From Zygnema circumcarinatum SAG 698-1b (taxonomy: Eukaryota; Plantae; Zygnematophyceae), in NCBI GenBank assembly GCA_037447605.1, contig CM074815.1, positions 744,001-808,000 on the forward strand: DNA of 64,000 nucleotides, written 5' to 3'. The translations under genes and the position numbers were made by a program. Every line of letters starts with the position of its first letter. Position 1 is the stretch's first letter. This document shows positions 16,340 to 62,299 of the stretch, piece by piece. The notes under the pieces were generated by a model. That model saw only the letters and a list, made by a program, of their open reading frames with translations. It had not been told where the DNA came from and did no database searches.

Positions 16340-19272
16340 ATGGGTAATTGTAAAGATGAAGCTGCGTATGAAGGTGTGTGGGAGAAGGGCTGCATTCCCA
16401 AAGAAGGCTGGTGCTGTGTGAGGGAGCCGCTGCTTGCAGACCAGAGAGGCATCGTTTTGGTTCTCCTCTGCCAGGCCCTGGCCCTTCTTCTGCATCCAGA
16501 AAGCAGCCATGGCGGGCGAGAAGGGAAGCTCAGCATGCTCGCAGAAGCAGCAACTCTCGAGTCTGTCGGAATAATTGCAGCAGTGCTCTGGTTGTCTGTT
16601 ACTGGTCTTTTGGGGAACACAGAATGGTACGGAAGAAACAGGGGGTCCCTTATTATAATATGTCATGCAGCAATTTCGATGACGAATGCGGTGGAAGTGC
16701 ATCGGTTTCCGAATGCTCCATGGACCAATGCGCTGCTTTACTGTACAGCTCCATCGCTCGCCTCTGCTTTGAGCCACTCTGGAATGTGGCCGGAGCTTTT
16801 CAGCCGACTTGCTGCACAGGTGACAATTTTCTTCACCCAAATTTTTTCATGATGATGGTGTTCCTCTGCTAGGGGGTCTCTCTCTACATTTGAAGGTTCA
16901 CTGTCAACTGCAGAGTGGTTAGGATGTTATGCAGGCTCTTTCAATTTGCGAAGCGATTTGGGGGGATTTGCAGGTAGTAGCATTTGGAGCCGTGCTTCTT
17001 TTCCTCGGCGATCGTGCGGCGATATCCACAAGTCTTCCACTTATAACTGCTACGAGTTTAGCATCAGGTTTGTTGGCGAGCTGCTGGAGAGGAGATGCTT
17101 GGAGCTTGGAAATCAATCCGCTTCAGTATGCGTGGGAAGGAAGGCTTCTCCCTCCTCACACCAAAGCTATCAGTGAGAACGTAAAACCTAGAGTTCAAGT
17201 GATTCCGGAAAATATGGAATTCAATAGTCCTTTGCTACGTACAGAACCGGCGGTCACAAATTCACCTTCCGAAATTGTCTCAGAAGCTCAGGCACTGAAG
17301 ACAGTACCTGCCACTTCTCTGATTGAAAGAGAGACTGGGAATAGACCAGGTCATGCAGGTCTCCAAGCAGCTAAGCAGAGTATTAACATACGTTCTGAGA
17401 AGCTTCAGTCGTCATCTTCTCAGCCACTTAGGACATCTGAAGTGAAGCTGTGTTCGGAAGAAAGGTGCTGTGATGCTGAGATGAAGGGTCTACAGGTGGG
17501 AAATCATTCAGCAGCATTCAGGTTTTCAGAAATTGGAAACCGATTAGAGGGGAGTCTGGATGCTTTGAGTGAGGAAACTATGGCTATGATTCAGTCAGCT
17601 TGTGAGGCGGTTGCTGCTGCGGAGGAGGCAGCTGCAGCGAGATCTGCTGCGGAAAAAGTTGTCATTGCAGCATTGAAAATTGCAGAGTTAGAGAAGCAGG
17701 TGGTGGAGAATAGGGTTGCTGAGGCAAAGAATAGTGTTGAGCAGGCGATGAGGGCAATACAGCGGGCAGCACAAGCAAGCCGATTCAACGAGATGAGACT
17801 GAATGGGGCTATTGTGGCGGAGCTCATGACGATAGCGGCTTCGTCAAAAGGGCTTCAGGAGGAAGCTCTCAAGAAGTGGTTCATGATATCGTTCCGAGCA
17901 ATGAAGAAAATTTCTTTGTTGCGAAATGGGGCTGACAGAGGTTGCTTGAGAGAGGTGATGGTTGCTAAGGAGAGTAGCAGAGGCGGGCTGGAGAAGATAG
18001 ATAGTGAAGGTTGTAAGCTTGGAAGTGCTGGAAATTGTACTTCATATGGTGAAGAGAAGGAACAGCATCTGGGCGATTCTCGTAGTGGTAGTTGTAATAT
18101 GGAACGTTTTATAACATGTAGAAGCTCTTTGGGAAGAAAATGGCTTCCAGCTGCTCCGGGGCGGAGGAGATGGGTAGCTGTGAGACGAGAAATATTACTT
18201 CGTAGATCACGAGTGAAAATCCCAGCGGCGAAATTGTGTTTCTTATTGGCTAGACAACGGTCTGTGGAAGCAGCAATAGAGTTTGAAAGATTCTGCTCTC
18301 CTTCACAGCTGCCGGATGAACTCTATCTGAGAGTAAGTGATGATTGGACTGGAGGGAACTTGTCAATATGGGATGACGATGAAAAGACCGTCAGCTTTTG
18401 AGTATGACTTGTCGGCATCGCTTTCTTGCTTGATGTGTTTGAACTTGCCTTCAAATTGGACGGACATTGAGTGTCTGTTTTTTCTTTCTTATGGAGTGCA
18501 GGCTGAGGAGGAAATTGAATCGTTCGGCTATGAGGAGGCAGTGAAGGAATGGAGGCATCGCCAAGGTGAAGCCATAGCCTTAGAATGCATGCAGACCTCC
18601 TCCCAAGAGGGGGAGATATCTGCAGCCATAGTTCTATGCAGAAATGTGCGAGTGGAGCTGGCAGCCATGGGTATAGCTGCGGTAAGAAGGGAGCCATGGC
18701 TCGCTTTGGAGCACAGGTATGGGCGGCAGGGCCTTCTCCTCTCGCCTCTAGAAGCTTGCCTACCACCGTCTCTATGGGTAAACTATGCGCAAACTGGATT
18801 ACAAGACTCCAGAACATGGAAGAACGCAGTCAGATCGTCCTGGCTTGCAGAGCACTTCACCATGTCGGGAATGCTTGAAAGCATGATAGACAGTGTGAGA
18901 CCTGAGTTGGGCCCATCTCAGAAGCAGGCACTGAGAACTGCTGTGAGAGATATGGACAGAGTGGAGGCAGCTGTGAGAGCGAGATTCGAGGAGCTCTGCC
19001 AAGGAATTGCAGTTTGGTTGAGAGGGGCTCCCTCTGCAGCTGAATTGGACCCCTCACGAGGTCCGGGAGCTTTGATAGCCACTCTCGGAGAGAGGGTGGA
19101 GGGTCTCTTTCTGGAAGCTGCAGACAGACACTTTCAGCTCTTTGAATTCTGCAGAGCTGTACTAGTGCCGAGGCAGATGGCAAGCCTCTTGGTGGGATTC
19201 AGTGAACATATTCGCAAATTGGGACATGTGGGGCAGCTCTGGGAGCTGAAGCATGCCGGAGAATGTAGCTGA
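16340..19272 (+). CDS. Predicted membrane + coiled-coil protein with a C-terminal DOG1/TGA-like domain. Exons 16340-16819, 16935-18332, 18502-19272 (~882 aa); start codon uncertain
   Basis: Two GT-AG phase-0 introns join three long ORFs in frame. The last exon has a DOG1-like pattern (EAVKEW...LLSPLEACLPPSLW...LGPSQKQAL...E..V...FEEL...LFLEAADRHFQL...VLVPRQMASLL...IRKLGHVGQLW). Confidence 0.75.
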
Positions 19273-41608: not shown

Positions 41609-44600
41609 TCAGAGCTGAGGCCCTTTGGCGAGCCAGGCGGCGATATCGTCTTGGTCACGTCGCAGCCACGCCGCGCGGGACCTTATGTCTTCGAGGGTTC
41701 GCCCCAGTTCCATGTTCGCCTCCGGCACGGGATGTGCTTTGAAAAACTCCTCCGCCTCCTGTGCTTTTTCGTAGGTGCTGAATCCCCGCAGGGGCACCGA
41801 CACCGCATCCTGCACCATATATACATACATACATACATACATGCATGTATGCATCGATGTTATGCCGAGGCATGGATACCACATGTTGCACGATAGGTAC
41901 ATGCATACATCCATGATGCATGCATCGATGTCAAGCAGATGGGTCGACACCACATGTTGCACCGCACATATATACATACATCATGTCCCACTCACTGATC
42001 CTATGGCCTTCCTCAAAACATGCATAATATCATGTGTATTGGGGCCCTCGCGAACATCCGAAACAAAGAGATAAGCGGATTTTTTTCTCTTGGTTCGGAT
42101 AGGTGACAGGCTGGGGGGATGCGCAGCTGTGGGTTACCAATATGGGCTTTAGGAGGTCCTGCATACCTGAATGAGCCCGGAGGAATTTTTAAACCGTGCG
42201 TAGATGCTTTCCCAGCGCTCCCTCACAAAGTCCCACTGAATTTCACGCCCCCAACGGTTTCTAGACAGCGCGGAAAATACGTACCTGCAGCACAGCATAC
42301 AAGATATTAAATAATAATTTAATAATTCGATAATGAGCATTTTTTAGTCTTTATAATATGGGGATATCTTGTTCGCAAAAATCAAATCTTGTAACTTACA
42401 TTAGTAATTTGCGAGTCTCATTTATTTCAAGCGATGACAATCTTCATCAGCAATCCGTTGGTGGAAACTTTCCGTTCTAAGAAGGTCTGCCCAATTGGAG
42501 AAACACATTTTAAGAGAGGCAACTTACGCAGTATCTTGTGCCTTCACCTCGTTCTCGTTGAGCCCAAATTCAAGATACTCCCGAATAAGTTCTTGATCCT
42601 TTGTCTGCCCCATCGCTGCAACAACATAAACCTAATTAGCCTAACAGATTTCCAACAAAGATAATATACCAGCCGAAGGAAACCATCCGTAGCTCTCAAA
42701 AGGTAGACAACAAAACATCAACACAGACATACATTCTTTTTCCTGCTGATTTTTCCACCTTCTAAACGGCTGACCTTTTCTTATTATCCAAAGAGTTCGC
42801 GTCCCACTTCTCCCTAAATCAAGTCTTTTATGGCGGTCTATCTACCTTTTGGTTTCACTCACCCATAAGACACTCCAGTTTAAAGTCCGGAGTCTGCGCT
42901 TCACGATAGAGCTGCTTTGCCGACTCAAATTCTTCCCGGCCTCCATACTTCACTGCTATATAACTAACTGGTTTCCGCAGATCGGCAGGCACTGAATGTG
43001 GGTCCTTTTGTAACTCTGAAAACCTTCTTCTGCATTCTTCTATTGTCGATTCATGACCAAATGCAGCAAGGCGGCCAAGAACAAGAGGTCTTAGCAAAGC
43101 CACCAAATGAGACTCTCCGGACTGAGGATTCCAACCCACTCGCTCTACAATGGGAATGAAGAGATCTCGTGCCACTGCCTCAAAGCGATCAAGATATTCT
43201 GTTGTAGAGAGAAGAACAGCTACCTCTCCCAAGTCTCCGCTTAGCTGATCCCAAACAGTGTATTCCGTCTCATTCTTGAATGAGAATGCCAATTCTAAAG
43301 CGTGGCTGCTAGCCAGAATCCCTGACTTGGCTAATGCGAAGGCATCCATCAGAATTCCCAAACGATCTGTCACACTCAGTGCATTTGACCGAACGGCCAA
43401 TCCCAGAGCAGCCCATTGCTTTAGGCTGTAATTTACGCGGAAAAATCCGGACTGTCCTGCATTCAGCTTTAGCCAACCCCCTTCTGGAAGCTCCAACTCG
43501 CTTGTCTCTACCTCCTTCTCTGTCAATATGGTAGTGGGGAGAGAAAAAGTTTTTCCATCTGCTGTACCAGCAATGGCTGTAATAGGGACCCACCATAGAT
43601 GTGCGTCTTCCTCCTCAGTGGGAGGTCCTTTTGAGAGAAATCTGCTTTGGTGAAGGTGCAGACCTCCCCCTGTAGAAGGGCTCACAGTGATGAGGGGATA
43701 GCCCATCTGTTGGGTCCAACTCATCATCATGCTCTCAACAGGCTTCCCAGATTCCTCTCCCACTGCTTTCCAAAGGTCGTTCGTAACAGTGTTTCCCCAT
43801 TGATGTCTCTTGAGGTAGGCTCGCAAGCCCTGCAAAACCCTTCGACACCATGTCATCATAGCCTAGCAAACGAAGAAGAATCAATGATGAATGACGTACA
43901 TGATGAATCAATTGATAACTGACACAAAAGCTGCAGAAAGCAGCATCGCCCACATGTCAGACGACGAGAGTGAGAGCCCCTCCTCTTAAGAAACGTACCT
44001 GTTTGAAGACTTCAGGGTTAACAGTAGCATCCAACTGTCGGATCACACAGGCTCCCTTCTCGTAAGAAAGGGCATCAAAAACTTGGTCGATCTCCTTAGG
44101 ATCGCGAATAGGGACTTCGATCGGGTGGGAGGATAGGAGCGCATCAGTCACTAGTGCAGAGCCGAAGTCAGTGCTCACAAACTGATTCCCGCACACCCAC
44201 AAGCCAAAGTGCATTTTTTCCAGTATTTTAGGGTTTGTAGAGTTTGATCTTGCATTGCGATCACACTCAGAGAGCGGAAGTATAATTGCACCAGCTCAGA
44301 ATGGCAACACAGAAGCAAACGACGGGAGTTCAATCTTCAAGAAATCAAAAACGTGGGTTTGAAAGCCTACACCAACTGCTCCTACTTTTCCCATTCCCAC
44401 CAAACTCGAAGCCTACTCGTAGAATCATCCAGTGCCGATGTCATTCCATCCTCTTATGTCATCCTCATTCTAGTTTCCGGATTGTCGTTATACGTCCTAC
44501 GCCGGTCTATTGTAACATATGCTTTTCAGATTTCGTTGACGTTAAATTGAATGGAACCATCGATGAAGGTGGACGAAGATTGTTCAGTCCTAGAGAATAT

Positions 44601-47600
44601 TCTACCTCAAGGTCAAGGTGAATCTGCCATATATAAAACTATTTGATTGTTGTTCAAACATGTCAGCTTCTGGAAACCCTAAAACAATTTGGTGATGCTC
44701 ATCTACCATGTATGGAGTTGTTCGATTGTTGAACAACTCTATCCAATGCTGGCAACATCCTACATGGAACAACAGCTCCATGCATCCATTCCATGCATCC
44801 AAAACCTCCTTCTAAAGTGAGCCCACCTGCGTCCATACGTCCCATTCAGGATGAACATGGTCCACCCCCAACCAGCCGACCCATGTTGCAAAGCCCTCAT
44901 TCAACCAGAGGTCGTTCCACCACTCCATTGTCACCAGGTTTCCGAACCACTGCAGTGCACATCACAAGGCTTCTAAGAAAACAAGGCTTTTTAAACAGAC
45001 TTTGAAGCAGGCGGAAGGGAAAGACAGCAAAAGGAGATGATAACGCAGATAAGGAAAGACTTAAAAAGTTTGCACTTCTGCTGATCACAGGCGGCAGATT
45101 TCAACGAGGATACAGTATTCAAGCAGTTTGAATTTATGAGCCTTGCCTTAAGGGCACGCATGAGCTTCGCTGAAGTTCAGAGTTTAAGTGGAGGTATTAC
45201 TTGCATGGATAGCTGTATGCGGACCTATGACTTGAAAACCAAAAGTGAATGCAAGGCTTGTTGCATATCACGACTAACCTTCATCTCATTCTGCAGCGTA
45301 AGCCAAGGCCTTACAGACAATACAAGAAAAGGCTGAATGTGCATTCATCAAATTTCGAAGCTATCGAGCGAAATCCTACTTGGTGAGCGAGCTCGTGAGA
45401 AACAACATAGGCGACATACTGACACGCAGCTGCTGAAGACTTGGCTTCATCCACCAACAACGCCGTATCGCGAAATGTGATGAGCCCCCAATTCTCCATT
45501 GCTCCCGAGGCAAATTCCGGAACAGCTGCATTGCATTGTACATAGCCATCTTTCACAATTGAGGGAGAGGGAGAGGGAGAGAGCGGGGCTCATGCGATGA
45601 AGCTCCAACGGCAGGTACATGCCCCTAATGATTATGCACATCGCTTCTTACTCTTAACAAACATTCACTAGCATAGGAATTAGCCTGGACTGAGGGTGTA
45701 ACTGAAACCAAAGAACAGAAAAGAGTTCCGTGATTGTCACGTCAAACGTACCCACAAGATCTGCTTTAGGAAGGGGAAATGCGATCCCAAAGTAGTCAGC
45801 GAAGAAGGAGAGAATCTCTGCAGCAATTTTGAGAGAAAAGCGGCCCTGCTCCGTGTTTCCAGGAGTTGTATACACACTCACCTGTACGGATGGTCATGAA
45901 AGATGTGTTGATTGAATTCCAGGCATCTAGAGTTTGATGCAAAAGGGCTTGCAAAGTATATGACTTGAAGAAAAGAACTTTGATGAAAGAGTCCCACAGA
46001 TCAACGACATGGATAAATGGCAAGGTGAATGAGATCGTTTGGGAGGGGAGGCATGACTTGTACAATACGCTACTGCAAACTTATATAAAGGGCACAAGGC
46101 AAATGCCTTTGATTCCCTTCATAAGTCTTCTCTATCATGGTGATGAAAAATGCACAAAAACCATCGGGTGCAAATAGACTCAGGAAGTGCTTAAGCTGCT
46201 TAAACAGCTCACCTCCACCCCTTCTTTTGTGGTCGTCGTCACCCTCTCCAAATGACCGACAACGAACGCCAACAAATATGTGCTCATGATTGGTGTATCT
46301 GCAAACTTAACCGCGGTCGATCCACTCGATAGAAGCTCACGACCAACTTCAGGCATGTTGGAGAGAGCGGTCAAACCCGGCTTCACGATCAAAGTGACGG
46401 CAAAGATGGCCTTGAATGAAGGCTCATCCCAGCAGGGAACTGCTCTGCGAGCATCTGTAGCTTCAAACTGTGTTGTAGCCATATACTGCTTCTTGCCATT
46501 CGTAGTATAAGAGGCACCTGCACGGAACTTGGCTTGGGCACAATGAAATGAAGAAGTCTATAGATAAAAGATTGCAGGCACATGCCCAATTCAAGAAAGA
46601 CTGGCTGAGCGTCATGCGATTAAGCTCGGATGAAGGATTAATCTAAGCCTTCACAATTGCCATCATCTTTCAGTTTTAACGGCTTTGCCAGTCAGTTCAT
46701 TCTCTATCAGAACATAAAAGATGCGCACACAACAATACATGAAGCCGGACACTTCACTTCGTTCGCAGAAATAATATGTCTCTACAGCTCATCGGGGTCA
46801 CTATTGCATAATTTCATCGAAGTTATTATTATTCTGTTTCCAAAACTTGAACCGCAGAACTAGTAAGTCTAAAACTCAGTGAAGCAATCCGATGGATGAC
46901 TTACGGTAGAATCCAATCATGTTATCGTTGAGCGTTCCCCGGTAGTTGAGGTGCAGCACAGCCTTTCCTGGTTCCAAAAATCTACTCCCGAGGCCCAGCA
47001 CTGCAGTTCCACTCTCATTGTCGAGCTCAATTGGATATGTTGTATCGTTAGGGGCAATGAAGTTGCCATTGCTGAAGACTTCGGCCTGCAAAACCCAGCT
47101 ATAATCTGACGAAACATCTCACATAAAGGAATGTTTGCATTTGGACACAGGATTTAAAACAGCTTTGAATCACATCAACACACAGAAGAACTTTACAATT
47201 GAATGCTGATTGACCATAGTTTCAATACATTGTGGCCGAACAGGCAAGCTTGTGTGCGTCAGAATAATGCAAGAATCAAAGCTTCAAGGTGGCCACAGTT
47301 GACTTCGAACATGCTATCAGCCTTCTGACTTGCCTTGCTTCCAGCAGCTGCTTGTTTAGTTGACAGCTGGCTAAGCCTTCAGTGCTTCAAACTACTTCAC
47401 TAATCCGCAGAAGCAAGATGCCTCGCGGAAGAGTGATACTTCGGCTTAGTCATAACCCTAGGAGTCAGCCTGGATGATAATTTGACAAGTTAACTCAATT
47501 TTCCTCAACTATGTAAATATAAGTAGATGGAAAAAGGACCCTCTGTTTATAAAAAAAATAAAAAGCAAAAACGAAGGGGGGCTGATCTCGAATACCGGCC

Positions 47601-48185
47601 CTGACATTCCGATCGTGAAGGTGAACGTAACATTCATTGGTGCCTAACTAAGAGGTTTTGCCAAAATTGATTGAAATAAGCATAAAGGGAAAAAAAACAC
47701 ACCTAAACACAAAAAAAAAAACACGCCTATGAAACAAGAGTTTCAAGTAATGAACATAGAAAATCATCAAAATAGAGAAAAAAAAAATTGATGACGTCCA
47801 AAATTCCTGACGTCCACCTCTCCTCCAGCAGTATCCTACCCCTCTTCCTTCCAAAAACTGCAGAAAAGCGGATGAGAATGCCCCTTGCGCGACCTAGAAG
47901 TCAAGCCTTTCCTCCAATGGCGATGCGCCACGTATGCAAATATTGACACGTGGCAAATTCCCATTGGAAAATGCTCCTTAGAACTACAGGACTGCACTGT
48001 GAAGGCCTCACCTTCAAGATGTGGAGGTCCTGCGCATGGAACGTGAGCTGGCTGACGCGCTGCAGCACGTCCAGCTCGATCTCTACCGACCCTGCAAAAG
48101 TGAAGTCCTGCAAATCAGGCTCCAATGTCACTGAATACTTGACCGGCTTCACATGCAACGGAAGCCTCTCAAACTCTGCAGCCAT
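41609..48185 (-). CDS. APM1: M1-family (puromycin-sensitive) aminopeptidase. Exons 48185-48012, 47085-46905, 46517-46213, 45881-45752, 45525-45380, 44949-44827, 44181-43999, 43829-42863, 42615-42528, 42284-42167, 41809-41609 (~871 aa)
   Basis: [34 protein letters not shown]|[23 protein letters not shown] (HExxH-x18-E) and [10 protein letters not shown]. All 10 introns are GT-AG with matching phase. Confidence 0.98.
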
Positions 48186-48399: not shown

Positions 48400-48760
48400 C
48401 CGACGTGGCGTCGTAATGGACGACGACCCATGGGTTCCATGAGGCCGTTTCCGCCAACGTGGCGCCGACGTGGCTTCCACGTGGTAACGAGGCACCGTTC
48501 CACAGAACTGTGCACCGCCTGCAGCTAGGCTCCCCCCCTCCCCGCCGTCGATCGCCACGATCGGAATTGCTGCAGCTCCCCGCCCCCCGGCCGCCCACCC
48601 GCCCTGCAGCGTCCTCCCAGGTACGGCGCAGCGCCCGAGCGGGCGACGCCGGCCGAGCGCGCGGTCACCGCGGTGCCGGTTGCCACGTAGTTGCCACGGC
48701 GGCGCCACGTCTGGCACGTCGATTACACGTCTGCATGTCTATCCACGTCGGCGCCACGTC
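48400..48760. promoter_or_regulatory. Cluster of ACGT-core (G-box/ABRE-like) motifs upstream of APM1
   Basis: About 10 ACGT cores, mostly CCACGT or CCGACGTGGC, in ~360 bp. Confidence 0.5.
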
Positions 48761-49275
48761 ATTTAAAACCACTGAAATTGAACTTCGGGTGTGCCCGCCG
48801 CCGCTTGCCCACCGCCCATTGAAATTGAACATCGTGTCCTGGTACCAGGAGGTCTAGAGTTCGATCTTTGTTGGAGGCGTGTTTGCTACACAGCCCGAGC
48901 GAGCGAGGGAGGCCCTGCTTGCTTGCGCGGAGCGGTGTGTGGCGGCCGCGCCCCCCCCCCTTACGCATTACCACCGCATGTGCTGCAGGTACGTCTCTAT
49001 CCATCTTTTTTTCTATCCATCCGTTTATGCAGCGTGGTTTACTTACCTCTTTCTTCTATTGCAGAAATGGATCCAAGAATTCCTCATCTCTATCCTCATC
49101 ATCTAGGGTTGAGTCCAGAAGACGAAGCGTGGAGCGTATTTGATGATGCCTCTTATCTAGTGAAGAAGAATGGATGTATTATAGGAGATGAAGAGCTTAA
49201 AAGGACAATATTTGCAGCGGAAACGACAATTGAAGATGAAGAGGAACAAAGACGCGACATGCCTATAAAGCCAAG

Positions 49276-52097
49276 GTATGCTATTGGCTTTCTGCTTTCT
49301 GCTTTTCACTTTCTGCTTTCTGCTCTGTGCTTTCTGCTTTTTGCTTTTGGCTTTCTACTTTCTGCTTTTTGCTTTTGCTTTCTGCATTCTGCTTTCTGCT
49401 TTCTGCATTCTGCATTCTGCATTCAGCATTCAGCATTCAGCATTCAGCATTCAGCATTCAGCATTCAGCATTCAGCATTCAGCATTCAGCATTCAGCATT
49501 CAGCATTCAGCATTCTACATTCTGCATCCTGCATTCAGCATTCAGCATTCAGCATTCAGCATTCTGCATTCTACTTTCTGCTTTCTGCTTTCTACTTTTT
49601 GCATTTTGCATTTTGCATTTTGCTTTTTGCTTTTGCTTTTTGCATTCTGCTTTCTGCTTTCTGCTTTCTGCATTCAGCATTCTGCATTCTGCATTCTGCA
49701 TTCAGCATTCAGCATTCAGCATTCAGCATTCAGCATTCAACATTCAGCATTCAGCATTCTGCATTCAGCATTCTGCATTCTGCATCCTGCATTCTGCATT
49801 CTGCATTTTGTATTTGCATTCTGCATTCTGCATTCTGCATTCAGCATTCAGCATTCAGCATTCAGCATTCAGCATTCAGCATTCAGCATTCAACATTCAG
49901 CATTCAACATTCTGACATTCTGACATTCTGCAACCTGCATCCTGCATCCTGCATCCTACTTTTTGCATTCTGCTTTCTGCATTCTGCATCTGCATTCTGC
50001 ATTCTGCATTCAACATTCAGCATTCAGCATTCAGCATTCAGCATTCAGCATTCAGCATTCAGCATTCAGCATTCAGCATTCAGCATTCAGCATTCAGCAT
50101 TCAGCATTCAGCATTCAGCATTCAACATTCAGCATTCAGCATTCAGCATCCTGCATTTTGCATCTTGCATTCTGCATTCTGCATTCTGCTTTCTGCTTTC
50201 TGCTTTTTGCATTCTGCATTTTGCATTTTGCTTTTTGCTTTTGCTTTTTGCATTCTGCTTTCTGCTTTCTGCTTTTTGCATTCTGCATTCTGCATTCAGC
50301 ATTCAGCATTCAGCATTCAGCATTCAGCATTCAGCATGCAACATTCAGCATTCAACATTCTGCATTGAGCATTGAGCATTGAGCATTGAGCATTGAGCAT
50401 TGAGCATTGAGCATTGAGCATTGAGCATTGAGCATTGAGCATTGAGCATTGAGCATTGAGCATTGAGCATTGAGCATTGAGCATTGAGCATTGAGCATTG
50501 AGCATTGAGCATTGAGCGGTGAGCGGTGAGCGATGAGCATTGAGCATTGAGCATTGAGCATTGAGCATTGAACGTGAGCATTGAGCATTGAGCGGTGAGC
50601 ATTGAGCATTGAGCATTGAGCATTGAGCATTGAGCATTGAGCATTGAGCATTGAGCATTGAGCATTGAGCATTGAGCATTGAGCATTGAGCATTGAGCAT
50701 TGAGCATTGAACATTGAGCATTGAGCATTGGGCATTGAGCATTGAGCGGTGAGCATTGAGCATTGAGCATTGAGCAGTGAGCATTGACGTGAGCATTGAG
50801 CATTGAGCATTGAGCATTGAGCATTGAGCATTGAGCATTGAGCATTGAGCATTGAGCATTGAGCATTGAGCATTGAGCGATGAGCATTGAGCATTGAGCA
50901 TTGAGCATTGAGCATTGAACGTGAGCATTGAGCATTGAGCATTGAGCATTGAGCATTGAGCATTGAGCATTGAGCATTGAGCGTGAGCGTGAGCATTGAG
51001 CAGTGAGCATTGAGCATTGAGCATTGAACATTGAGCATTGAACATTGAGCATTGAGCATTGAGCGTGAGCATTGAGCATTGAGCATTGAGCATTGAGCGT
51101 GAGCATTGAGCGTGAGCATTGAGCATTGGGCATTGAGCATTGAGCGTGGGCATTGAGCATTGAGCGCATTGAGCATTGAGCAGTGAGCGTGAGCATTGAG
51201 CGGTGAGCATTGAGCATTGAGCATTGAGCGTGAGCGGTGAGCATTGAGCATTGAGCATTGGGCATTGAGCATTGGAGCATTGAGCATTGAGCATTGAGCA
51301 TGAGCATTGAGCATTGAGCATTGAGCATTGAGCATTGAGCGTGAGCGGTGAGCATTGAGCATTGAGCGTGAGCATTGAGCATTGAGCATTGAGCATTGAG
51401 CATTGAGCATTGAGCATTGAGCATTGAGCATTGAGCATTGAGCATTGAGCATTGAGCATTGAGCATTGAGCATTGAGCATTGAGCATTGAGCATTGAGCA
51501 TTGAGCATTGAGCATTGAGCATTGAGCATTGAGCATTGAGCATTGAACGCGTGAGCATTGAGCGGTGAGCATTGAGCATTGAGCATTGAGCATTGAGCAT
51601 TGAGCATTGTGAGCATTGAGCGTGAGCATTGAGCATTGAGCATTGAGCATTGAGCATTGAGCATTGAGCATTGAGCATTGAGCATTGAGCATTGAGCATT
51701 CTGCATTGAGCATTGAGCATTGAGCATTGAGCATTGAGCATTGAGCATTCTGCATTCTGCATTCTGCATTCTGCATTCTGCATTCTGCATTCTGCATTCT
51801 GCATTCTGCATTCTGCATTCTGCATTCTGCATTCTGCATTCTGCATTCTGCATTCTGCATTCTGCTGAATTCTGCATTCTGCATTTTGCATTCTGCATTC
51901 TGCATTCTGCATTCTACATTTTGCTGTTGGCTTTCTGCTTTCTACTTTCTGCTTTCTGCTTTTGGCTTTCTGCTTTTTGTTTTCTGCTTTCTGCTTTGTG
52001 CTTTCTGCTTTCTGCTTTTCTTTCAAATTTTGTACATTTTATGTCATTCTTTTTGAAGAATTATTGAATTAAGGGTTTTCCTTTTGTTTTTGTGCAG
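49276..52097 (+). repeat. 7-mer satellite (CTTTCTG/CATTCTG/CATTCAG/CATTGAG variants) filling a 2.8-kb intron
   Basis: Directly visible; bounded by AG|GTATGC and TTGTGCAG|G. Confidence 0.95.
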
Positions 52098-52469
52098 GGC
52101 AACTACAGCTCAAAGCCAATTATTAGTTTCTGGGGTAGAGAGGTTACGCCCAAAATCTACGAAGGCATCATACCGCCCCGTAATAAAGCAATTTGTTGCT
52201 AAGTGTGAAACAGAGCGTTGGAGGCCAGTTCCACATTCAGAAAGAGTGGCAGCTTTTTTATTTTGGAGATTAGACAATGGCACTATGAATGCAGGTCCTT
52301 TAACCCCAAGCACTTTGTCTAATAGTATTTTTGCATTGCAACATGCCCAAAAAACTATTGATTTTATAACACATGATCATGTATCTTTGGGTGTAAAAGT
52401 GAGTGAAAACTTGCAAGTCAAGTATATGGTGGAGATAATGGCCCGCTCTACCGATGAAAGACGACTTAG

Positions 52470-53661
52470 GCAAGTTATCTTTCTGCTTTCTGCATTCTGC
52501 ATTCTGCATTTTGCATTCTGTATACTGCATTCAGCATTCTGCATTCTGCATTCAACTTTCAGTTTTCTGCATTCTGCATTCTGCATTCTGCATTCTGCAT
52601 TCTGCATTCTATATTTTGCATTCTACATTCTGTATTCTACTTTTTGCTTTCTGCATTCTGCTTTCTGCTTTCTGCTTTTTGCTTTTTGCTTTTTGCATTC
52701 TGCATTCTGCATTCAATATTCTACATTCTACATTTTGCATTTTGCATTCTGCATTCTGCTTTCTGTATTCTGCTTTCTGCATTCTGCATTTTGCATTCTG
52801 CATTCTGCAATCTGTATTCTGCATTCTGCATTCTGCATTCTGCATTGAGTATTGAGCATTGAGCATTGAGCATTGAGCATTCTGTATTCTGCATTCTGCA
52901 TTCTGCATTCTGCATTTTGCATTCTGCATTCTGCATTCTGCATTCTGCATTTTGCATTCTGCATTCTGCATTTTGCATTCTGCATTCTGCATTGAGCATT
53001 GAGCATTGAGCATTGAGCATTCTGCATTTTGCATTCTGCATTGAGCATTGAGCATTGAGCATTGAGCAATCTGCATTTTGCATTTTGCATTTTGCATTCT
53101 GCATTCTGCATTCTGTATTCTGCATTCTGCATTCTGCATTCTGCATTTTGTATTCTGCATTCAGCATTGAGCATTGAGCATTGAGCATTCTGCATTCTGT
53201 ATTCTGCATTCTGCATTCTGCATTCTGCATTCTGCATTCTGCATTCTGCATTCTGCATTCTGTATTCTGCATTCTGTATTCTGCATTCTGCATTCTGCAT
53301 TCTGCATTTTGTATTCTGCATTCAGCATTGAGCATTGAGCATTGAGCATTGAGCATTCTGCATTCAGCATTCTGCATTCTGCATTCTGCATTCTGCATTC
53401 TGCATTCTGCATTTTGTATTGAGCATTGAGCATTGAGCATTCTGCATTTTGCATTTTGCATTTTGCATTCTGCATTTTGCATTCTGCATTTTGCATTTTG
53501 CATTCTGCATTTTGCATTCTGCATTCTGCATTCTGCTTGTTGTTTGCTGCTTTCTCTCTTTCCCTCTTTGCTTCCCGATCTCTCCCTCTCTCCCTCCTTA
53601 CTTGCTCTCCCCCTACCTCCTCCTCCCTCTCTAAATGTCTTTTAGTTTTTTGTGCCTACAG
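52470..53661 (+). repeat. Same 7-mer satellite filling a 1.2-kb GC-AG intron
   Basis: CATTCTG/CATTTTG/CATTGAG units, bounded by AG|GCAAGT and CCTACAG|G. Confidence 0.9.
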
Positions 53662-55626
53662 GATGTTCATTGATCCTAAACGAGGGACTGTTAAGGATAA
53701 ACTAGCGCTTTCAGACTTTCAAAAGTTGTTAAGGTATATGGGGTCATTCAACAACGAAACATATTTAAAGTATGGTAGTATGGTAGCTACAGCAAAGGCA
53801 ATGATGCTTCGAGGAGATGACCAAAGATCAATTCGGCACGATCTATTCATCATGATACGGGCTACAAATGTTTTATTGGCCCATCCAATGTAATCGGCCC
53901 CTGTGTGGTGTCACGGGGAAAAAGAACCGAGGAGCAGTCCACATGGGCTTCCTTTTAGACATTCAGATCCGAATTTTGCAGCTCCATGGATGGATATCAC
54001 GATATTTGTTCCACAGGTTCATTGTATCAAAAGAACCTCCTCCAGATCTTCGGAGCAACTACCTTTGGTGAGTCTAAACTTATCCAGTCAACTATTATTT
54101 GTGTATTTTGTTTTATATTTTTGCACAAATGTACTGTTTTTATTGACACGTTTGTTTGTTGTTTTGCAGGTACAAAACCTTATTGTTTCCGTCCAAAGAC
54201 TCCATTGAGGTTGAAATGGGTCGTGAAGCACAATCAAAGTTCATGAAAAAAATCATTGAGCACTTAGATCTCAGCTGTTCAGGCACCTTGCACATATTCC
54301 GTGGCGCGGCAGCAAGGGAATGTTTCGCGCACTCTTGTGGGTTTGATCAAATCCGTGGCAGGAGGCAAATAAGCCAAATAAATCCCTTTGCAATCAATTA
54401 CCTTTTCTCGACGGCTCCTCCACCGTAGTGGTGCTCATAGGATTCAAAAAAGAAGGCTATGACATGGATGTTTTGTTCTAAAACCAAATGGCGCCAGGAA
54501 GGTGGAAGTTTCCATTTCTTTTCCCAACTCTTGAGTTATCAGATAAAGGTATTATGTCATATCAGATGGATCTTTTGGCCGAAGACAGTAGAAGGGTGTG
54601 GAAAGAGATTGAGAGGAGGGAAAGGGTTAACGCTATGTGTTTTATGTGTAGATTACCGTGGGAGTGCCTTTTAAGTCGCTGAATCTTTCACATAGAGGCT
54701 TTTTGTGGACACGCTATGCTATTTTGCATGTGTTTTATTGCAAGATGCGTTGTCAAGCCCAATAAATTCCATCAAGTCATGAATCATCCATTCTCCTTCC
54801 AACGTGAGCAATGGGATGGTCTTCTTTTAGGGTTGCCGCCGCCAGAATGTTATTGTTTTCCCGCTAGTCGCCTTTTGCACTTGGCCGCTTAGTGCTCCTT
54901 TCTCCGCTTCGGCCGCTGCTCCCCGCTTCTGCTACCTGCTTTGCTGTTGCTGAGAAACACCCATACAACCTAAGTTGCCGCGTCGCTGAGAAAAACACTG
55001 CCAGCTCGTCGCTAGCCGCCGCTGCCGCTTCTTTTTTGCTTTTGTTGTGTTGCTGCTGTTGGTGATGCTGTTGCTGTGGGCGGATTGGAGGTGGAGGCGG
55101 AGAGTAAGAAGGAGGAAGGGGGCTTCATTAACGGGGTGAGGCGGACGTCGCCTGTTTTGAGGTTGTTATTTCAGTGAAGAAGTTCTCAATTTTGCGAGAG
55201 CGGCCAGGATCGAGGGGGGGAGGAAGAAGGAGGCCTTTGACAAGATCCAAGCTAAGACAACACAATCTCAGTCATGGACTCGAACTATGGTGAGTAAAAC
55301 CATGCTGCATCACTCTCATCACTCTCATCTCTCTAGTGTATCAAACAAAATTGTATTGATATCCTCATTACAGTCCTACTTTTCACACTAGTTGTACAGT
55401 TTTCAAGTGTCAACTTTTTTGTTGATTTATGGGCAAAGAGCAATATTTGCAGGGGAGCAATGAACACCAGACACAAGTGGGACGACAAAGCCGGGGTGAT
55501 GGCATGGACCAAAGGTCAGAGCTGGGAAGCGAAGGTAGAGGGGAGTACTTGCAAGGCGGCATGCAGGAAAGGACAGATGTGGGCAGAGAAGGCAGGGGCC
55601 AAGACATGCAAGGAGGCACGGGGCCA

Positions 55627-56015
55627 AGCATGGACGAGGAAAGAAACGGTTGGGGCCAAGGCAGTCAAAGAGGCAGGGGAGCAAGCATGGACGAGGAAAG
55701 AAACGGTTGGGGCCAAGGCAGTCAAAGAGGCAGGGGAGCAAGCATGGACGAGGAAAGAAACGGTTGGGGCCAAGGCAGTCAGAGAGGCAGGCCAGGAATG
55801 GGGCCAGGAATGGGGCCAGGCATGGGGCCAGGAATGGGGCCAGGAATGGGGCCAGGAATGGGGCCAGGAATGGGGCCAGGAATGGGGCCAGGAATGGGGC
55901 CAGGAATGGGGCCAGGAATGGGGCCAGGCATGGGGCCAGGAATGGGGCCAGGAATGGGGCCAGGAATGGGGCCAGGAATGGGGCCAGGAATGGGGCCAGG
56001 CATGGGGCCAGCCAT
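55627..56015 (+). repeat. Coding repeats: 57-bp x3 (SMDEERNGWGQGSQRGRGA), then 12-bp x~18 (MGPG)
   Basis: 57-bp units start at 55627, 55684 and 55741; (ATGGGGCCAGGA)n spans ~55795-56015. Confidence 0.95.
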
Positions 56016-57727
56016 GGGGTCAGGGGCTAAAGATGGTCAGGGACTTAGAGTGCATGTTGGGAAACAGCTAGATAGATATTTAGTCAGCATGCACACAGAT
56101 GTACTTAGCTTGTGGAAGGAGTTCTGGATTGTCGGGCCAGAAGGAAAAAAGCCCATCATCGAATTGATGGCATTTTTTGGTGTGACGCGTTGGTACAGTG
56201 GTGGACGACAAGGAGAAAATAATCGGAAAAATGCTTGGTGGAATCGAATGTATCCTATTGTCATAGAAATTATATGGAGGATGGATGAGGGTGGTGAAGA
56301 CGAGAAAACGGCAGTGGCGAATGTCTCTTCAATGATGAAGGCTGTCAGTCCAAAAACCATTGATGGTTTGGTCCGGGCTTTAAAAGGGTGGGATGTTGTT
56401 AAAAGGGGGAAGAGTGGACATGCTCGTGAAGCATTGGGGATTGTTGGAAAAGAACCTGATCGAGCAAAAGACTTTTTGGAGAAGGCTGTAAAGTACAAAA
56501 GAATGATGTGTGGCTATAGTATAGCAGAGAAAAGGAAAAGGAAATAAAAGTAAAATAGAATGTCCAACTACATGCGGTAGAGATTTGCAGCGCTTCTTGG
56601 AGAAGGCCGCCATTGTTAAAGTAAGCTTCTTTGCCCACTTTTCTCCCCATGCATTTTATCTTTTTCCTTTTCTTCATCAACTTGGTGATTGTTCTTCTTC
56701 TCCCTTCCTCCCTGCAACTTGCATCCCTTCATACCCCCCTGACATGAAAAAATCGGCTTTTAGGGTTTGTTAGGGTTCTTTTCTATCTCAATCCGTGTTC
56801 AGTTTTATGAAGTCATATTGCTTGACTTTAAAAAAAGCTTATATTTGGTTTGGTGGTGACAGCAGTTCAGATTTCGGCGGCGGCCCACGTGTTGGTGGGA
56901 GAGCCTCGCCTCGCCTTGCCTGTAGAGTAGGGCCACACTCCTCTTCGGCTCGCGTGTACAAACCACAGGAGCTCCTCTGAAGGTGGGTATGGCCAACAAT
57001 TATCTCTGTGGTCATTTGCCTGAGTATGATAAGGGGAAGTGAGTATTATCATCTGAAACCTTTCTTTTTTGGAGAAGGTATTAGAGGTAGGGCCTATTGC
57101 TGAAAATTAGATCGTTCAAAAAAAAGCATTTACTTTAGAAGGGTAAGTGGTGGATACAAAGGTAAGAAGGACGAGAAGTTTGCTGCCACGGAAAGAGTGA
57201 ATAAGGGAGGCTGAGATATGGGAATGGAGTAGTTGATTAGCGGATGCAAGTGTGCCTAATTAAATAAATAACTGCGACTGATACCTTGTATATTGTTGTG
57301 TAGGTGTGCGTGGCCAAGGTAGTTGACGATGACTCGGAGCACCTGAAGGACTGCATTGTACTCACTACGCCACCGCGAGTCTTGGGGGGAAGTTTGTGGA
57401 GCAGACTGTGTGTAACTCTCGGCGGAAACTTAGCACTAGGTGAGCTCTTTGGATGTCATTTGAGCCCCTGGAGATGTTTGCGATTGTTGCGTTTCTAGTG
57501 ACTGTTCTACCTTGGTTGACTTCTTGTTTATCTTCGCAAATGTGGTCGCAGGCCCTGGACGGACTGCACTTGAATGAGAAACGTGATCAAGCTGGAATCA
57601 TTAATTGCTCTTCGGCCTGNNNNNNNNNNNNNNNNNNNNNNNNNNNNNNNNNNNNNNNNNNNNNNNNNNNNNNNNNNNNNNNNNNNNNNNNNNNNNNNNN
57701 NNNNNNNNNNNNNNNNNNNTATGAACA

Positions 57728-60700
57728 CTCCCGCCTCCCCCTCCCTCCTCTCCCTCTCTCCCCCTCCCCTCCCTCCCTCCTCTTCCCCCTCTCCTCCCTC
57801 CCTCTCTCCCCCTCCCCCCCTCCCTCCCTCCTCTCTCCCTCCCTCCCTCCTCTCCCCCTCCTCTCTCCCTCCCTCCCTCTCTGCCCCTCCCCCCTCCCTC
57901 CCTCCCTCTCTCCCCCTCCCCCCTCCCTCCGTCCCTCTCTCCCCCTCCCCCCTCCCTTCCTCCCTCTCTCACCCTCCCCCCTCCTTCCCTCCCTCTCTCC
58001 CCCTCCCCCCTCCTTCCCTCCCACTCTCCCCCTCACCCTCCCCCCTCCTCTCTCCCCCCCTCCTCCCTCCCTCTCTCCCCCTCCCCCCTCCTTCCCTCCC
58101 TCTCTCCCCCTCCCTTTTCCCTCTCTCCCCCTCACTCCCTCCTCTCTCCCCCTCCCCCCACCCTCCCTCCCTCTCTCCCCTTCCCCCTCCCTCCCTCCCT
58201 CTCTCACCCTCCCCCCTCCCTCCCTCCCTCTCTCCCCCCCCTCCTCCCTCCCTCTCTGCCCCTCCCCCTCCCTCCCTCCCTCTCTCCCCCTCCCCCTCCC
58301 TCCCTCCCTCTCTCCCCCTCCCCCTCCCTCCCTCCCTCTCTCCCCCTCCCCCTCCCTCCCTCCCTCTCTCCCCCCCCCTCCCTCCCTCCCTCTCTCCCCA
58401 CCCTCCCTCCCTCCTCTCTCCCTCCCCCTCCCTCCCTCCTCTCCCCTCCCTCCCTCCCTCCCTCTCTCCCCTCCCCCTCCCTCCCTCCCTCTCCCTCCCT
58501 CCCTCCCTCCTCTCTCTCCCCCTCCCTCCCTCCCTCTCTCCCCCTCCCCCTCCCTCCTCCTCTCTCCCCTCCCCCTCCATCCCTCCCTCTCTACCCCCCT
58601 CTCCCTCCCACCATCTCTCCCACTCCCGCCTCCCCCCTCCCCTCTCTCCCTCTCTCCCCCTCCCCCCTCCCTCCCTCCCTCTCTCCCCCTCCCTCCCTCC
58701 CTCTCTCCCCCTCCCCCTCCATCCCTCCCTCTCTCCCCCCCTCTCCCTCCCACCATCTCTCCCACTCCCGCCTCCCCCTCCCTCTCTCCCTCTCTCCCCC
58801 TCCCCCTCCCTCCTCCTCTCTCCCCCTCCCCCTCCCTCCCTCCCTCTCTCCCCCTCCCCTACCTCCTCCCTCTCTCCCTCCCTCCCTCCCTCCCTCTCTC
58901 CCCCCCCTCCCTCCCTCCCTCTCTCCCCACCCTCCCTCCCTCCCTCTCTCCCCCTCCCCCTCCCTCCGTCCCTCTCCCCCTCCCCCTCCCTCCCTCCCTC
59001 TCTCCCCCTCCCTCCCTCCCTCTCTCCCCCTCCCCCTCCTCCCTCCTCCCTCTTCCCCCTCCCCCTCCATCCCTCCCTCTCTCCCCCCCTCTCCCTCCCA
59101 CCATCTCTCCCACCGCCTCCCTCCCTCTCTCCTCTCTCTCCCCTTCCCCCTCCCTCCCTCCCTCTCTCCCCCTCCCTCCTCCCTCCCTCTCTCCCCCTCC
59201 CCCATCCCTCCCTCTCTCCCCCCCTCTCCCTCCCACCATCTCTCCCACTCCCGCCTCCCCCTCCCTCTCTCCCTCTCTCCCCCTCCCCCTCCCTCCCTCC
59301 TCTCCTCCCCCTCCCTCCTCCCTCTCCCCCCTCCCTCCCTCCCTCTCTCCCCCTCCCCCTCCTCCCCTCTCTCCCCCTCCCTCCCTCCCTCTCTCCCCCC
59401 CCTCCCTCCTCCTCTCTGCCCCTCTCCTCCCCTCCTCCCTCTCTCCCCCCTCCCCCCTCCCTCCTCCCTCTCCCCCGCCCTCCCTCCCTCCCTCTCTCCC
59501 CCCTCCCGCCTCCCCCTCCCTCCTCCTCTCTGCCCCTCTCCCTCCCTCCCTCCTCTCCCCCTCCCCCTCCCTCCCTCCTCTCTCCCCCTCCGCCCTCCCT
59601 CTCTCCCCTCCCCCTCCTCCTCCCTCTCTCCCCTCCCCTCCTCCCTCCCTCTCTACCCCTCCCCTCCTCCCTCCTCCCTCTCTCCCCCTCCCCCCTCCCT
59701 CCCTCCCTCTCTCCCCCCCCTCCCCCCCCTCCCTCCCTCTCTGCCCCTCCCCCTCCCTCACCTTCCCTCTCTCCCCCTCCTCCCTCCTCTCTCCCCCTCC
59801 TTCCTCCCTCTCTCCCCTCCCCCTCCCTCCCTCCCTCTCTCCCCTCCCCTCCCTCCCTCCTCTCCCCCCCCCTCCCTCCCTCCCTCTCTTCATCCCCCTC
59901 CCCTTCCTCCCTCCTCTGCCCCTCCACCTCCCTCCCTCCCTCTCTCCCCCCTCCCTCCCTCCCTCCCTCTCACTTAGCCTCCCCCCTCCTCCTCCCTCTC
60001 TCCCCCTCACGCCTCCCCCCTCCCTCCTCCGTCTCTCCCCCTCCCCCCTCCCTCCCTCCCTCTCTCCCACCCCTCCCCCTTCCTCTTTCCCTCTCTCCCT
60101 TCCCCCTCCCTCCTCCGTCTCTCCCCCCCTCCCCCTCCTCCCTCCCTCTCTCCCCCCCTCCCTCCCTCCCTCTCTGCCCCTCTCCCCTCCCCTCCCTCCC
60201 TCTCTCCCCCTCCCCCTCCCTCCCTCCCTCTCTCCTCCTCTCCCACTCCCTCCCTCTCTCCCCTCCCTCCCTCCCTCTCTCCCCTCCCCCCTCCCCCTCC
60301 TTTCTGCTTCCCCCTCCTCCTCCTCTCTCCCACACTCCCCTCCCTCCTCTCTCCCCCTCCCCCTCCCTCCCTCCCTCTCTCCCCCCCTCCCCCCTCCCTC
60401 CCTCTCTCCCCCTCCCCCCTCCCTCCCTCCTCTCTCCCCTCCCCCCTCCCTCCCTCCCTCTCTCCCCCACTGCACCTCCCTCTCTCCCCCCCCCTCCCTC
60501 CCTCCCTCTCTGCCCCTCCCCCTCCCTCCCTCCCTCTCTCCCCCCTCCCCCTCCCTCCCTCTCCTCCCCCTCCCCCTCCCTCCCTCCCTCCCTCCCTCTC
60601 TCCCCCTCCGCCTCCCGCCCCCCTCCCTCCCTCTCTCCCCCTCCCCTCCCTCCCTCCCTCTCTCCCCCCCTCCCTCCCTCCCTCTCCTGCCCCTCTCCCT

Positions 60701-60745
60701 CCCTCCCTCCCTTTTTCCCCTCCCCCTTCCTCCCTCTCTCCTCCA
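57728..60745. repeat. ~3-kb polypyrimidine/polypurine low-complexity tract
   Basis: Almost exclusively C/T on the + strand; begins right after a 100-N gap. Confidence 0.95.
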
Positions 60746-62299
60746 CGCTGGCTGGAAGCCGTCAACGCTCGGTGACCGCTGGTCGTGGTCGCAGGTTGCT
60801 TCAGCGCCGAGGAAGCTTCCCAAGGTGCAGCCATGGCTGCCGACTTATCTTCAAAACCACGAGGAGAAGCCCGAGTGCTTGCGAACGGACAACGTGCGTT
60901 CCATGAGCCAGTCAGCCAAAGGGCGTAGAAGCTCGTTGCAGCAGGGAGGGCTGCGGAGTTAAGCTCCGGCGCTTAACCCTAAAACAGACTGGGGATGAGC
61001 ACCGAGGGGGCTCTGTTCCCATTCTCGCCTTAGGATTAGGGTTTGGAGATGGCTCTGGAGCATGCCGGAAGGGGGGGGGGCTATCCCTTTACTTCTCGCA
61101 CCGATGGAGATTTTCTATTAGAGGGAGGAGGGAGATCGCACTCTGTGAAGGTCAATGGTTGTGTCGGCGCTCCTCCGCGCTTTAGAAGCAATTGATTAGG
61201 GTTGTAATTATTATTATCCTTTTTTTTTAATTAATTTGAGTACGTGATTGGAAAATTTTCACTGTCAATTTTTTGCTACCATTCTCTTGGATGGCTTTTT
61301 CCAATGATGCTTGTGTTTTGGAGAGGAAAAAAAACGAAATTAGAGCATGTGGCATCTATCTATAAGCTGAATTCTGCCTTCTATGCAGTGTTCTGCTTGC
61401 CGCTGTGTACGTGAAGGGCAATCTGCTTATGAACAGTTCACTGTGTTAATGCCATTAGAAGATACCATGCTTGCCAACTTCTGACTCTTTGATTTGTTGA
61501 TGTCGCGAAAACTCCCTTCGAAAACGCCCTCCCTTCCCTTTGGGCGTATGCTACAGGAAGGTAGAATAGAGGAGTTTCCACGTGAACATGCAGAGCTCCG
61601 TGGTTTTGCCGTGCTCTGCCTGCAAAAGGGCGCCAATGGTGACCTTTGGGAAGGCTGCAAAAGGCTAGGGTTGCCGATTTAGGCATTTCTTGGAGAACAA
61701 AGGATACTTCTTACCGAGGATGCCGACAACCACTGCTTGTGGTTGAGGGGTTTTTTTTTTTTTTTGAGTCGTTCTATTGGGTTACTTTGGGATAGTGGTT
61801 GGAATATGCCTGGGCATGACCCCATACAAGAGCCATCAACCAGTTAGAATAGCAGAAGATGGGAATAGGAGCATGCTGTGTGATGGAGTGCAGGGCAGTA
61901 GTGAGCAGTTTACAGAGGGTGCTGAAGGGCGGGTGCAGCAGGCGGTGCGTGGGTTTTGGCAATAGGAGCCAGTTAATTGTATTTTGTAGACATGCAGGGC
62001 TTGTACTTTGGCTTTGGCTTTTGGAATTTGTATGTGGATGAATTGGTATAAGCTGAGTTGGGGATTAGGGATGAACATTGTTGGCGACTATTTGGCACTG
62101 GTTGTTCATCTTGAATATAGTGGAATTTCATTGCTTGATCCAATGGTTCGACCTGTGCAGTAGTAATGGCTTTTGAAAGTTAATGCAGAAGCAGTAACAG
62201 AAAGGAGAGAAATTTGCATTTGGATCTCACGGTGAGCGATGCCCCATTGGACAAAAGCAGCAACAATTTTTCCGTAGGGTTATATGTAATTCGCAAGAA

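Follow-up and report, generated by a model that had tools for sequence, protein, structure and literature searches.

Whether Cryptons occur in the streptophyte lineage, and whether they may still be active there, is the question raised by a gene in the alga Zygnema circumcarinatum SAG 698-1b. The gene lies on a 64-kb stretch (GCA_037447605.1, contig CM074815.1, positions 744,001 to 808,000), hereafter the window, to which all coordinates refer. Elements of the CryptonF group combine a tyrosine recombinase with a GCR1_C domain and have been described from fungi and oomycetes (PMC3212892). An initial annotation, made from the letters alone, proposed that the window gene has this architecture, with spliceosomal introns and no reverse transcriptase (RT). 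The block similarity and the single spliced mRNA described below bear this out. We put at about 0.8 the probability that this locus represents one copy of the gene of a DNA transposon of CryptonF type. This reading is supported by pieces that follow the CryptonF order and resemble its conserved blocks, by the presence of both domains on one spliced mRNA, and by neighbouring genes that belong to the host.

Catalytic residues and similarity to CryptonF

The catalytic residues of the gene stand in canonical order: the R of LRGDD (53810-12), the K (53919) of GKKN (53916-27), HIFR (54291-54302) and the Y of NYL (54399-54401). In the window translation the HxxR and the Tyr share one frame, and all three elements named initially, R(GDD), HIFR and the Tyr, were recovered. 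The window has lost the W of GRW, but this residue is present in the transcribed version of the gene, where the tyrosine-recombinase set R...K...HxxR...W...Y is complete and in order.

CryptonF reference blocks were copied from the alignment in Additional file 3 of PMC3212892. The gene parallels the order of that alignment throughout, from RP..T...Y...Q...C, LLRGe..R....DLF, GK.N..G and RH.DP..C to YLF.R[WF], EP-PP, WY, H..R, QI...GRW and YL...P...GF, followed by a GCR1_C-like string in exon 7. Spacings are also held in common: RH.DP..C is followed after eight residues by YLF.R[WF], EP-PP after seven residues by WY, and the distance within QI...GRW is the same. Compared by eye with the published alignment, the exon 2 motif RPKST..Y...KQF..C resembles the CryptonF N-terminus. 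The string in exon 7 reads Y.l....TDV..lW.E...G..GK..I..L....G..W, a GCR1_C-type core.

Each published block was compared with the matching piece by Smith-Waterman alignment, with 3000 shuffles each. The resulting z values, which are supportive and not definitive, were 5.3 for box I against the window (score reached by 1/3000 shuffles) and 6.6 for the YLF block (0/3000). Against the transcribed version the YLF block rose to 11.7, with 16/37 residues identical (0/3000). The box II-Tyr block, in which the window has lost GRW, gave a z of 0.5 (890/3000) for the window and 3.1 (30/3000) for the transcribed version. For the GCR1_C core the z was 5.2 with that of yeast Hot1 (13/31 identical; 2/3000) and 2.2 with that of CryF1_PI (112/3000), both against the window. 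In an unbiased tblastn comparison covering the entire window, the best match fell exactly at the expected site for two of the five blocks; the core block of Hot1 matched best at 56095-56193.

Neighbours in a language-model Atlas are consistent with both domains. The exon 4 piece, spanning HxxR to Tyr, lies near eukaryotic clusters carrying Phage_integrase. PF12550 occurs in 21 of the 100 clusters nearest to the C-terminal piece (best 0.93, with 198 shared features), and one cluster near this piece combines GCR1_C with NDC10_II.

Transcripts and gene structure

The gene model was read from the sequence and its translation. Contigs of three RNA-like runs (X20, X7 and X11) and one DNA-like run (X1), representing four studies, were aligned to 53545-56700. 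The gene is a single plus-strand unit at 49067-56547 with seven coding exons and six coding introns (Table 1), whose ends are, in order, GT-AG, GC-AG, GT-AG, GT-AG, GT-CA and GT-AG. Its sequence was detected in more than 20 runs labelled as the same organism.

The junctions 52469|53662, 54067|54170 and 55289|55453 are exact in RNA contigs of three public runs. RNA contigs reach 53662 out of the last bases of exon 2, with a loose end at 53660, which confirms the GC-AG intron 2. Between 54405 and 54661 an RNA contig measures 161 nt and a DNA contig 264 nt; since 54549-54651 is the only GT..AG pair in the window that fits this shortfall of 103 nt, we place intron 4 there. The check on junction reads suggested initially thus returned exact joins for introns 2, 3 and 6 and a joint at intron 5. 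Four exon blocks and three introns had been recognised at first; these blocks and splice sites stand as placed, and the count is extended to seven coding exons by introns 4, 5 and 6. In the window intron 5 ends in GT..CA; the acceptor of the transcribed copy may differ, or the joint may conceal a few unaligned letters.

One RNA contig of 1489 nt links exons 1/2 through 6, and overlapping contigs extend into exon 7. The C-terminal open reading frame (ORF) is thereby chained to the recombinase exons and is the last exon of the recombinase mRNA. It had been described as a separate GCR1_C-like ORF, and a separate GCR1_C gene is ruled out by these contigs. An intron in the 3' untranslated region (UTR) is supported by the continuation of X7 at 56866.

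Table 1. Features of the CryptonF-type gene, in window coordinates
Feature	Position	Strand	Remarks
Candidate 5'-UTR intron	48989-49064	+	Consensus sites CAG|GTACGT ... TTGCAG|AA, from sequence alone
Coding exon 1	49067-49275	+	ATG, acidic N-terminus, GT donor at 49276; boundaries from sequence
Intron 1	49276-52097 (2822 nt)	+	GT..AG; almost all 7-bp satellite
Coding exon 2	52098-52469	+	N-terminal core-binding-type domain; GC donor AG|GCAAGT
Intron 2	52470-53661 (1192 nt, GC-AG)	+	7-bp satellite as in intron 1; junction in RNA contigs of X20, X7, X11
Coding exon 3	53662-54067	+	Box I LRGDD..R...DLF (R 53810); GKKN 53916-27; RH.DP..C...YLF.RF...PPD block
Intron 3	54068-54169 (102 nt, GT-AG)	+	Joint present in RNA runs X20, X7, X11, absent from DNA-like X1
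Coding exon 4	54170-54548	+	HIFR 54291-54302; Tyr 54399-54401; stops 54426, 54479
Intron 4 (inferred)	54549-54651 (103 nt, GT-AG)	+	Length difference between RNA and DNA contigs
Coding exon 5	54652-54748	+	RNA contig pieces align; window frame open, runs on into exons 6-7
Intron 5	54749-55173 (425 nt)	+	RNA joint 54748->55174 in X20, X11; in frame; window ends GT..CA
Coding exon 6	55174-55289	+	RNA contigs and frame
Intron 6	55290-55452 (163 nt, GT-AG)	+	Joint in X20, X7, X11, absent from X1
Coding exon 7	55453-56547	+	Low-complexity linker, then GCR1_C-like domain ~56077-56393; stop 56545-47
3'-UTR intron	56621-56865 (GT-AG)	+	RNA contigs depart from window at 56620; X7 continuation at 56866

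Introns 1 and 2, which flank exon 2, are filled by a single 7-bp satellite with the variants GCATTCA, GCATTCT and GCATTGA, as found with a tandem repeat finder and a heptamer census. The variants are graded along the array, GCATTCA/GCATTCT being followed by GCATTGA and then by GCATTCT. GT dinucleotides on the coding strand are strongly depleted in the two introns, with 38 and 20 observed versus ~176 and ~74 expected.

The linker in exon 7 is built from two coding repeats, one of 57 nt in 3.5 copies (55595-55791) and one of 12 nt in 19.6 copies (55790-56024), which is translated as (PGMG)n. X7 and X1 show a collapse of read depth over 55877-55982, and there is a cluster of variants at 55809-55821. 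Exon 7 is probably either polymorphic in its number of repeats or poorly assembled there.

The 3' UTR segment 56586-56642 recurs at one or more further loci: every run, including the DNA-like X1, has contigs that match only from 56586 or only to 56642, and their sequence beyond this match is unrelated to the window and absent from it.

A broken window copy and an unbroken transcribed version

The first exons and the GCR1_C frame of the window copy are open, as had been noted, exons 1-3 for 270 codons up to the first stop at 53891 and exons 5-7 for 435 codons. Exon 3 loses its frame through a patch of diverged sequence (53837-53953) and a cluster of indels with a net loss of one base (53970-53984). 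Exon 4 carries a cluster of small deletions (54354-54387) and two stops, at 54426 and 54479, and the window differs markedly from the runs over 54406-54600. With these frameshifts and stops and the loss of GRW, the window copy as read is unable to encode the full protein.

The runs carry a different sequence at these positions. All four have 126 nt (+9) in place of 53837-53953, and show +G, -1 and -1 at 53970, 53982 and 53984. With these differences applied, the stretch from 53954 to the end of exon 3 is free of stops and yields the RH.DP..C...YLF.RF string in all four runs. Two versions of 54354-54387 occur among the runs; that of X20 and X11 has a net gain of six bases, restores GRW and is stop-free over 54171-54425. 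Over the stretches in which the frame of the read version can be followed, 53954-54067 in four runs and 54171-54425 in two, an unbroken, transcribed and correctly spliced version of the gene therefore exists in the same organism. The initial description of the copy as decayed accordingly holds for the window, where the breaks are real, and does not extend to the frame-preserving sequence in the runs.

More than one version or locus is involved. The DNA-like X1 equals the window over 55032-55654, differs from it by ~1% without gaps over 55994-56700 and is collinear beyond 56700, and it has two versions at 54205 and at 55243; one X1 contig diverges at 55411. Altogether, at least two sequence versions besides that of the window are present among the runs, and some contig loose ends are absent from the window. 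The breaks are equally compatible with genuine decay of this copy, with a paralogue, with a difference between strains and with an error in the assembly.

It is somewhat unlikely, in our judgement, that the window copy is really intact and that its frameshifts, stops and patches are consensus errors in a multi-copy, possibly methylated stretch; the assignment to CryptonF would be unaffected. Such errors would explain why four runs from four studies, the DNA-like one included, agree against the window at the break points, and why many of the differences are indels of 1-2 nt, concentrated in the patches 53970-53984, 54354-54387 and 54690-54700 and often beside runs of G or A. The assembly is moreover scaffolded, with N gaps nearby. 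Consensus errors do not readily account for two patches, of 117 and 195 nt, in which divergence exceeds 15%, or for ~1% plain substitutions in the otherwise gap-free C-terminal exon, which is above the usual polishing residue. Furthermore, no run contains more than about one third of the sampled words of 53640-55400, a sign of another strain or of a paralogue. X1 also has its two versions at 54205 and 55243.

Assignment to CryptonF and proposed mechanism

Several observations weigh against placing the gene in CryptonF. A host gene could equally be steadily expressed, rich in introns and located among other genes. Three of the five short blocks missed the locus as their best match in the tblastn comparison with the whole window, the window's own box II-Tyr piece has no significant similarity to the published block, and the blocks had been selected after inspection of the sequence. 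The profile comparison with NDC10_II (PF16787) and GCR1_C (PF12550), named beforehand as one that could speak against the proposal, gave no Pfam match at E<=10, Phage_integrase included; only contiguous pieces were searched. With PHROG and NCBIfam the contiguous pieces gave nothing beyond noise, and a PDB sequence search with four pieces gave nothing relevant. Phmmer with the HxxR-Tyr exon against 1.84 billion representatives returned 0 matches, and word-index searches were empty for exon 1 within a longer ORF and for both length ranges used with the C-terminal ORF.

The missing profile matches are probably due to the shortness and divergence of the pieces, and the lack of any automated match on a contiguous piece suggests a divergent lineage. 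Scans for related loci with the C-terminal domain in metagenome and viral contigs, and exact-protein look-ups, likewise found nothing. Single-sequence AlphaFold models of the C-terminal domain and of exon 2 reached predicted local distance difference test scores of 42 and 50, a quality insufficient for fold comparison.

An improbable alternative is a host gene derived from a Crypton by domestication, an immobile recombinase or DNA-binding protein of which the window holds a pseudogenised paralogue or allele. Domestication of Cryptons is well documented (PMC3212892), and the gene is expressed and correctly spliced in runs of several studies, has six coding introns, stands in gene-rich surroundings and is followed by sequence with which X1 is collinear. 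The transcribed version, however, retains the whole set of R, K, HxxR, W and Y, whereas the known genes derived from CryptonF have lost the catalytic site (PMC3212892). The several sequence versions in the reads and the broken window copy also speak against domestication, as does a synonymous to non-synonymous ratio of 9:10, which is nothing out of the ordinary.

That the resemblance to a recombinase and to GCR1_C arose by chance, or that the gene belongs to another group such as CryptonS, A or I or a DIRS/Ngaro remnant, is very improbable. In its favour, no profile or database match was obtained at all, the Atlas clusters around exon 4 are labelled Phage_integrase and not NDC10_II, and recombinase similarity was measured against CryptonF proteins only. 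Against this stand five blocks in CryptonF order and spacing, including strings typical of CryptonF, with z of 5-12 versus shuffles, as well as the GCR1_C-like domain on the recombinase mRNA. There is also no RT or ribonuclease H (RNase H) nearby: Pfam searches of the pieces detected neither RT nor RNase H nor a DDE domain, and the flanks show no long terminal repeats or terminal inverted repeats, the longest repeat shared by the 5' and 3' flanks being <=10 bp. A DIRS/Ngaro-type retroelement was rejected for lack of an RT or RNase H match and of terminal repeats.

Although fungi and oomycetes are the best-known CryptonF hosts, contaminant DNA from either has virtually no chance of explaining the gene, which shares the 64-kb window with M1 aminopeptidase and Cox11 genes, on a piece that extends at least 1.1 Mb further, and is present in over 20 runs that bear one organism label; the contamination raised initially as a possible objection was rejected on these grounds.

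On the CryptonF reading, the single mRNA of seven coding exons encodes a helical domain at the N-terminus, then the catalytic domain of a tyrosine recombinase, then the repetitive low-complexity linker and last the GCR1_C-like domain. If the protein works as CryptonF elements do, its recombinase would break and religate DNA by way of a phosphotyrosine intermediate, and the GCR1_C-like domain would bind DNA in a sequence-specific manner. This model of the Crypton recombinase is said to go back to Goodwin in 2003. The active element of Chlamydomonas is consistent with it (PMC9977147).

At least one member of the family is potentially functional. Since an unbroken and correctly spliced version is present in RNA, the Crypton family may still be active in this organism. 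Only tentatively, and at less than even odds, do we suggest an active autonomous CryptonF in this streptophyte alga, intron-rich and expressed, with a full catalytic set and several genomic copies, which would have been inherited from the green ancestor held in common with Chlamydomonas or acquired from fungi or oomycetes.

Comparison with known Cryptons

In the literature searched, Cryptons are reported from fungi, oomycetes, diatoms, animals and the chlorophyte Chlamydomonas (PMC3212892, PMC9977147); no report of a streptophyte Crypton was found there, a search of incomplete coverage with Repbase outside it. CryptonF-1_cRei is active in Chlamydomonas reinhardtii, has CACCG ends and a CAYCG target, and prefers gene-proximal sites (PMC9977147). 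The Zygnema gene shares with it a green-lineage host and the combination of tyrosine recombinase and, here, a GCR1_C-like domain. The window copy also adjoins the 5' end of a host gene, which resembles the insertions of CryptonF-1_cRei in gene-proximal intergenic sequence and 5' UTRs. In contrast to that element, whose ends and target are known, the window copy is without defined ends, and its host is a streptophyte and not a chlorophyte; the two are likened by description and not by sequence.

Like the CryptonF elements of fungi and oomycetes (CryF1_PI, CryF1_CI, CryF2_TS and others; PMC3212892), the gene carries an N-terminal domain, the recombinase and a C-terminal domain of GCR1_C-like type on one protein, with the conserved blocks in equal order and spacing and block identities of 33-50%. 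Unlike them it has six coding introns, two of which are swollen by 4 kb of heptamer satellite, a repetitive linker of ~190 residues ahead of the GCR1_C-like domain, and three additional residues between GRW and the Tyr; its single exons are also too divergent for Pfam NDC10_II and GCR1_C. Five traits mark the gene out: its wealth of introns, the swelling of some of them by satellite, the length of its repetitive linker, a divergence that hides single exons from profile searches, and the existence of an expressed, catalytically complete version.

The yeast proteins Gcr1, Hot1, Msn1 and Cbf2/Ndc10, which are derived from Cryptons (PMC3212892), share the GCR1_C-type core, most directly seen in the identities to Hot1 given above. 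They are immobile and their catalytic site is dead or absent, whereas the transcribed version of the Zygnema gene retains the catalytic set. With CryptonS, CryptonA, CryptonI and DIRS/Ngaro the gene has in common a eukaryotic tyrosine recombinase with R-H-R-Y chemistry. Those groups lack GCR1_C, CryptonA having DUF3504 and DIRS/Ngaro having RT and RNase H, and neither DUF3504 nor RT/RNase H was found here.

Among DNA transposons, Cryptons are both rare and little understood, and activity has been observed only in Chlamydomonas (PMC9977147). If the tentative reading of an active streptophyte lineage holds, Streptophyta would gain their first described Crypton, and signs of current activity would be on record for only two lineages. 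A gene of CryptonF type that is expressed and catalytically complete would, in the lineage leading to land plants, widen the known range, offer a second system for studying Crypton movement and bear on whether Cryptons were inherited within the green lineage or transferred into it. Exon-by-exon Pfam and large-scale searches miss this lineage, and standard annotation would therefore overlook it.

Genomic surroundings

The gene sits among host genes, as had been proposed. A multi-exon gene of the M1 aminopeptidase family (Peptidase_M1_N, Peptidase_M1, ERAP1_C) occupies 42000-48185 on the minus strand with its start at 48185, and the Crypton gene begins ~0.9 kb from that start in divergent orientation. 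Cox11 is found at ~29.5-30.1 kb of the window. No second copy of the Crypton gene was found within the window by tblastn and blastn, and Rfam gave nothing over its whole length.

The upstream region that the Crypton gene shares with the aminopeptidase gene contains an imperfect inverted repeat of 46 bp (83%), at 48453-48497 and 48671-48715. Two long ORFs at 16923-19269 have no Pfam match at E<=0.001. Downstream of the gene, a gap of 100 N at 57620-57719 is followed by ~3 kb of C/T-rich simple repeat, with 72.6% G+C over 58001-60000, and this repeat (57620-61000 region) creates an artificial open frame of 1169 codons for P, S and L.

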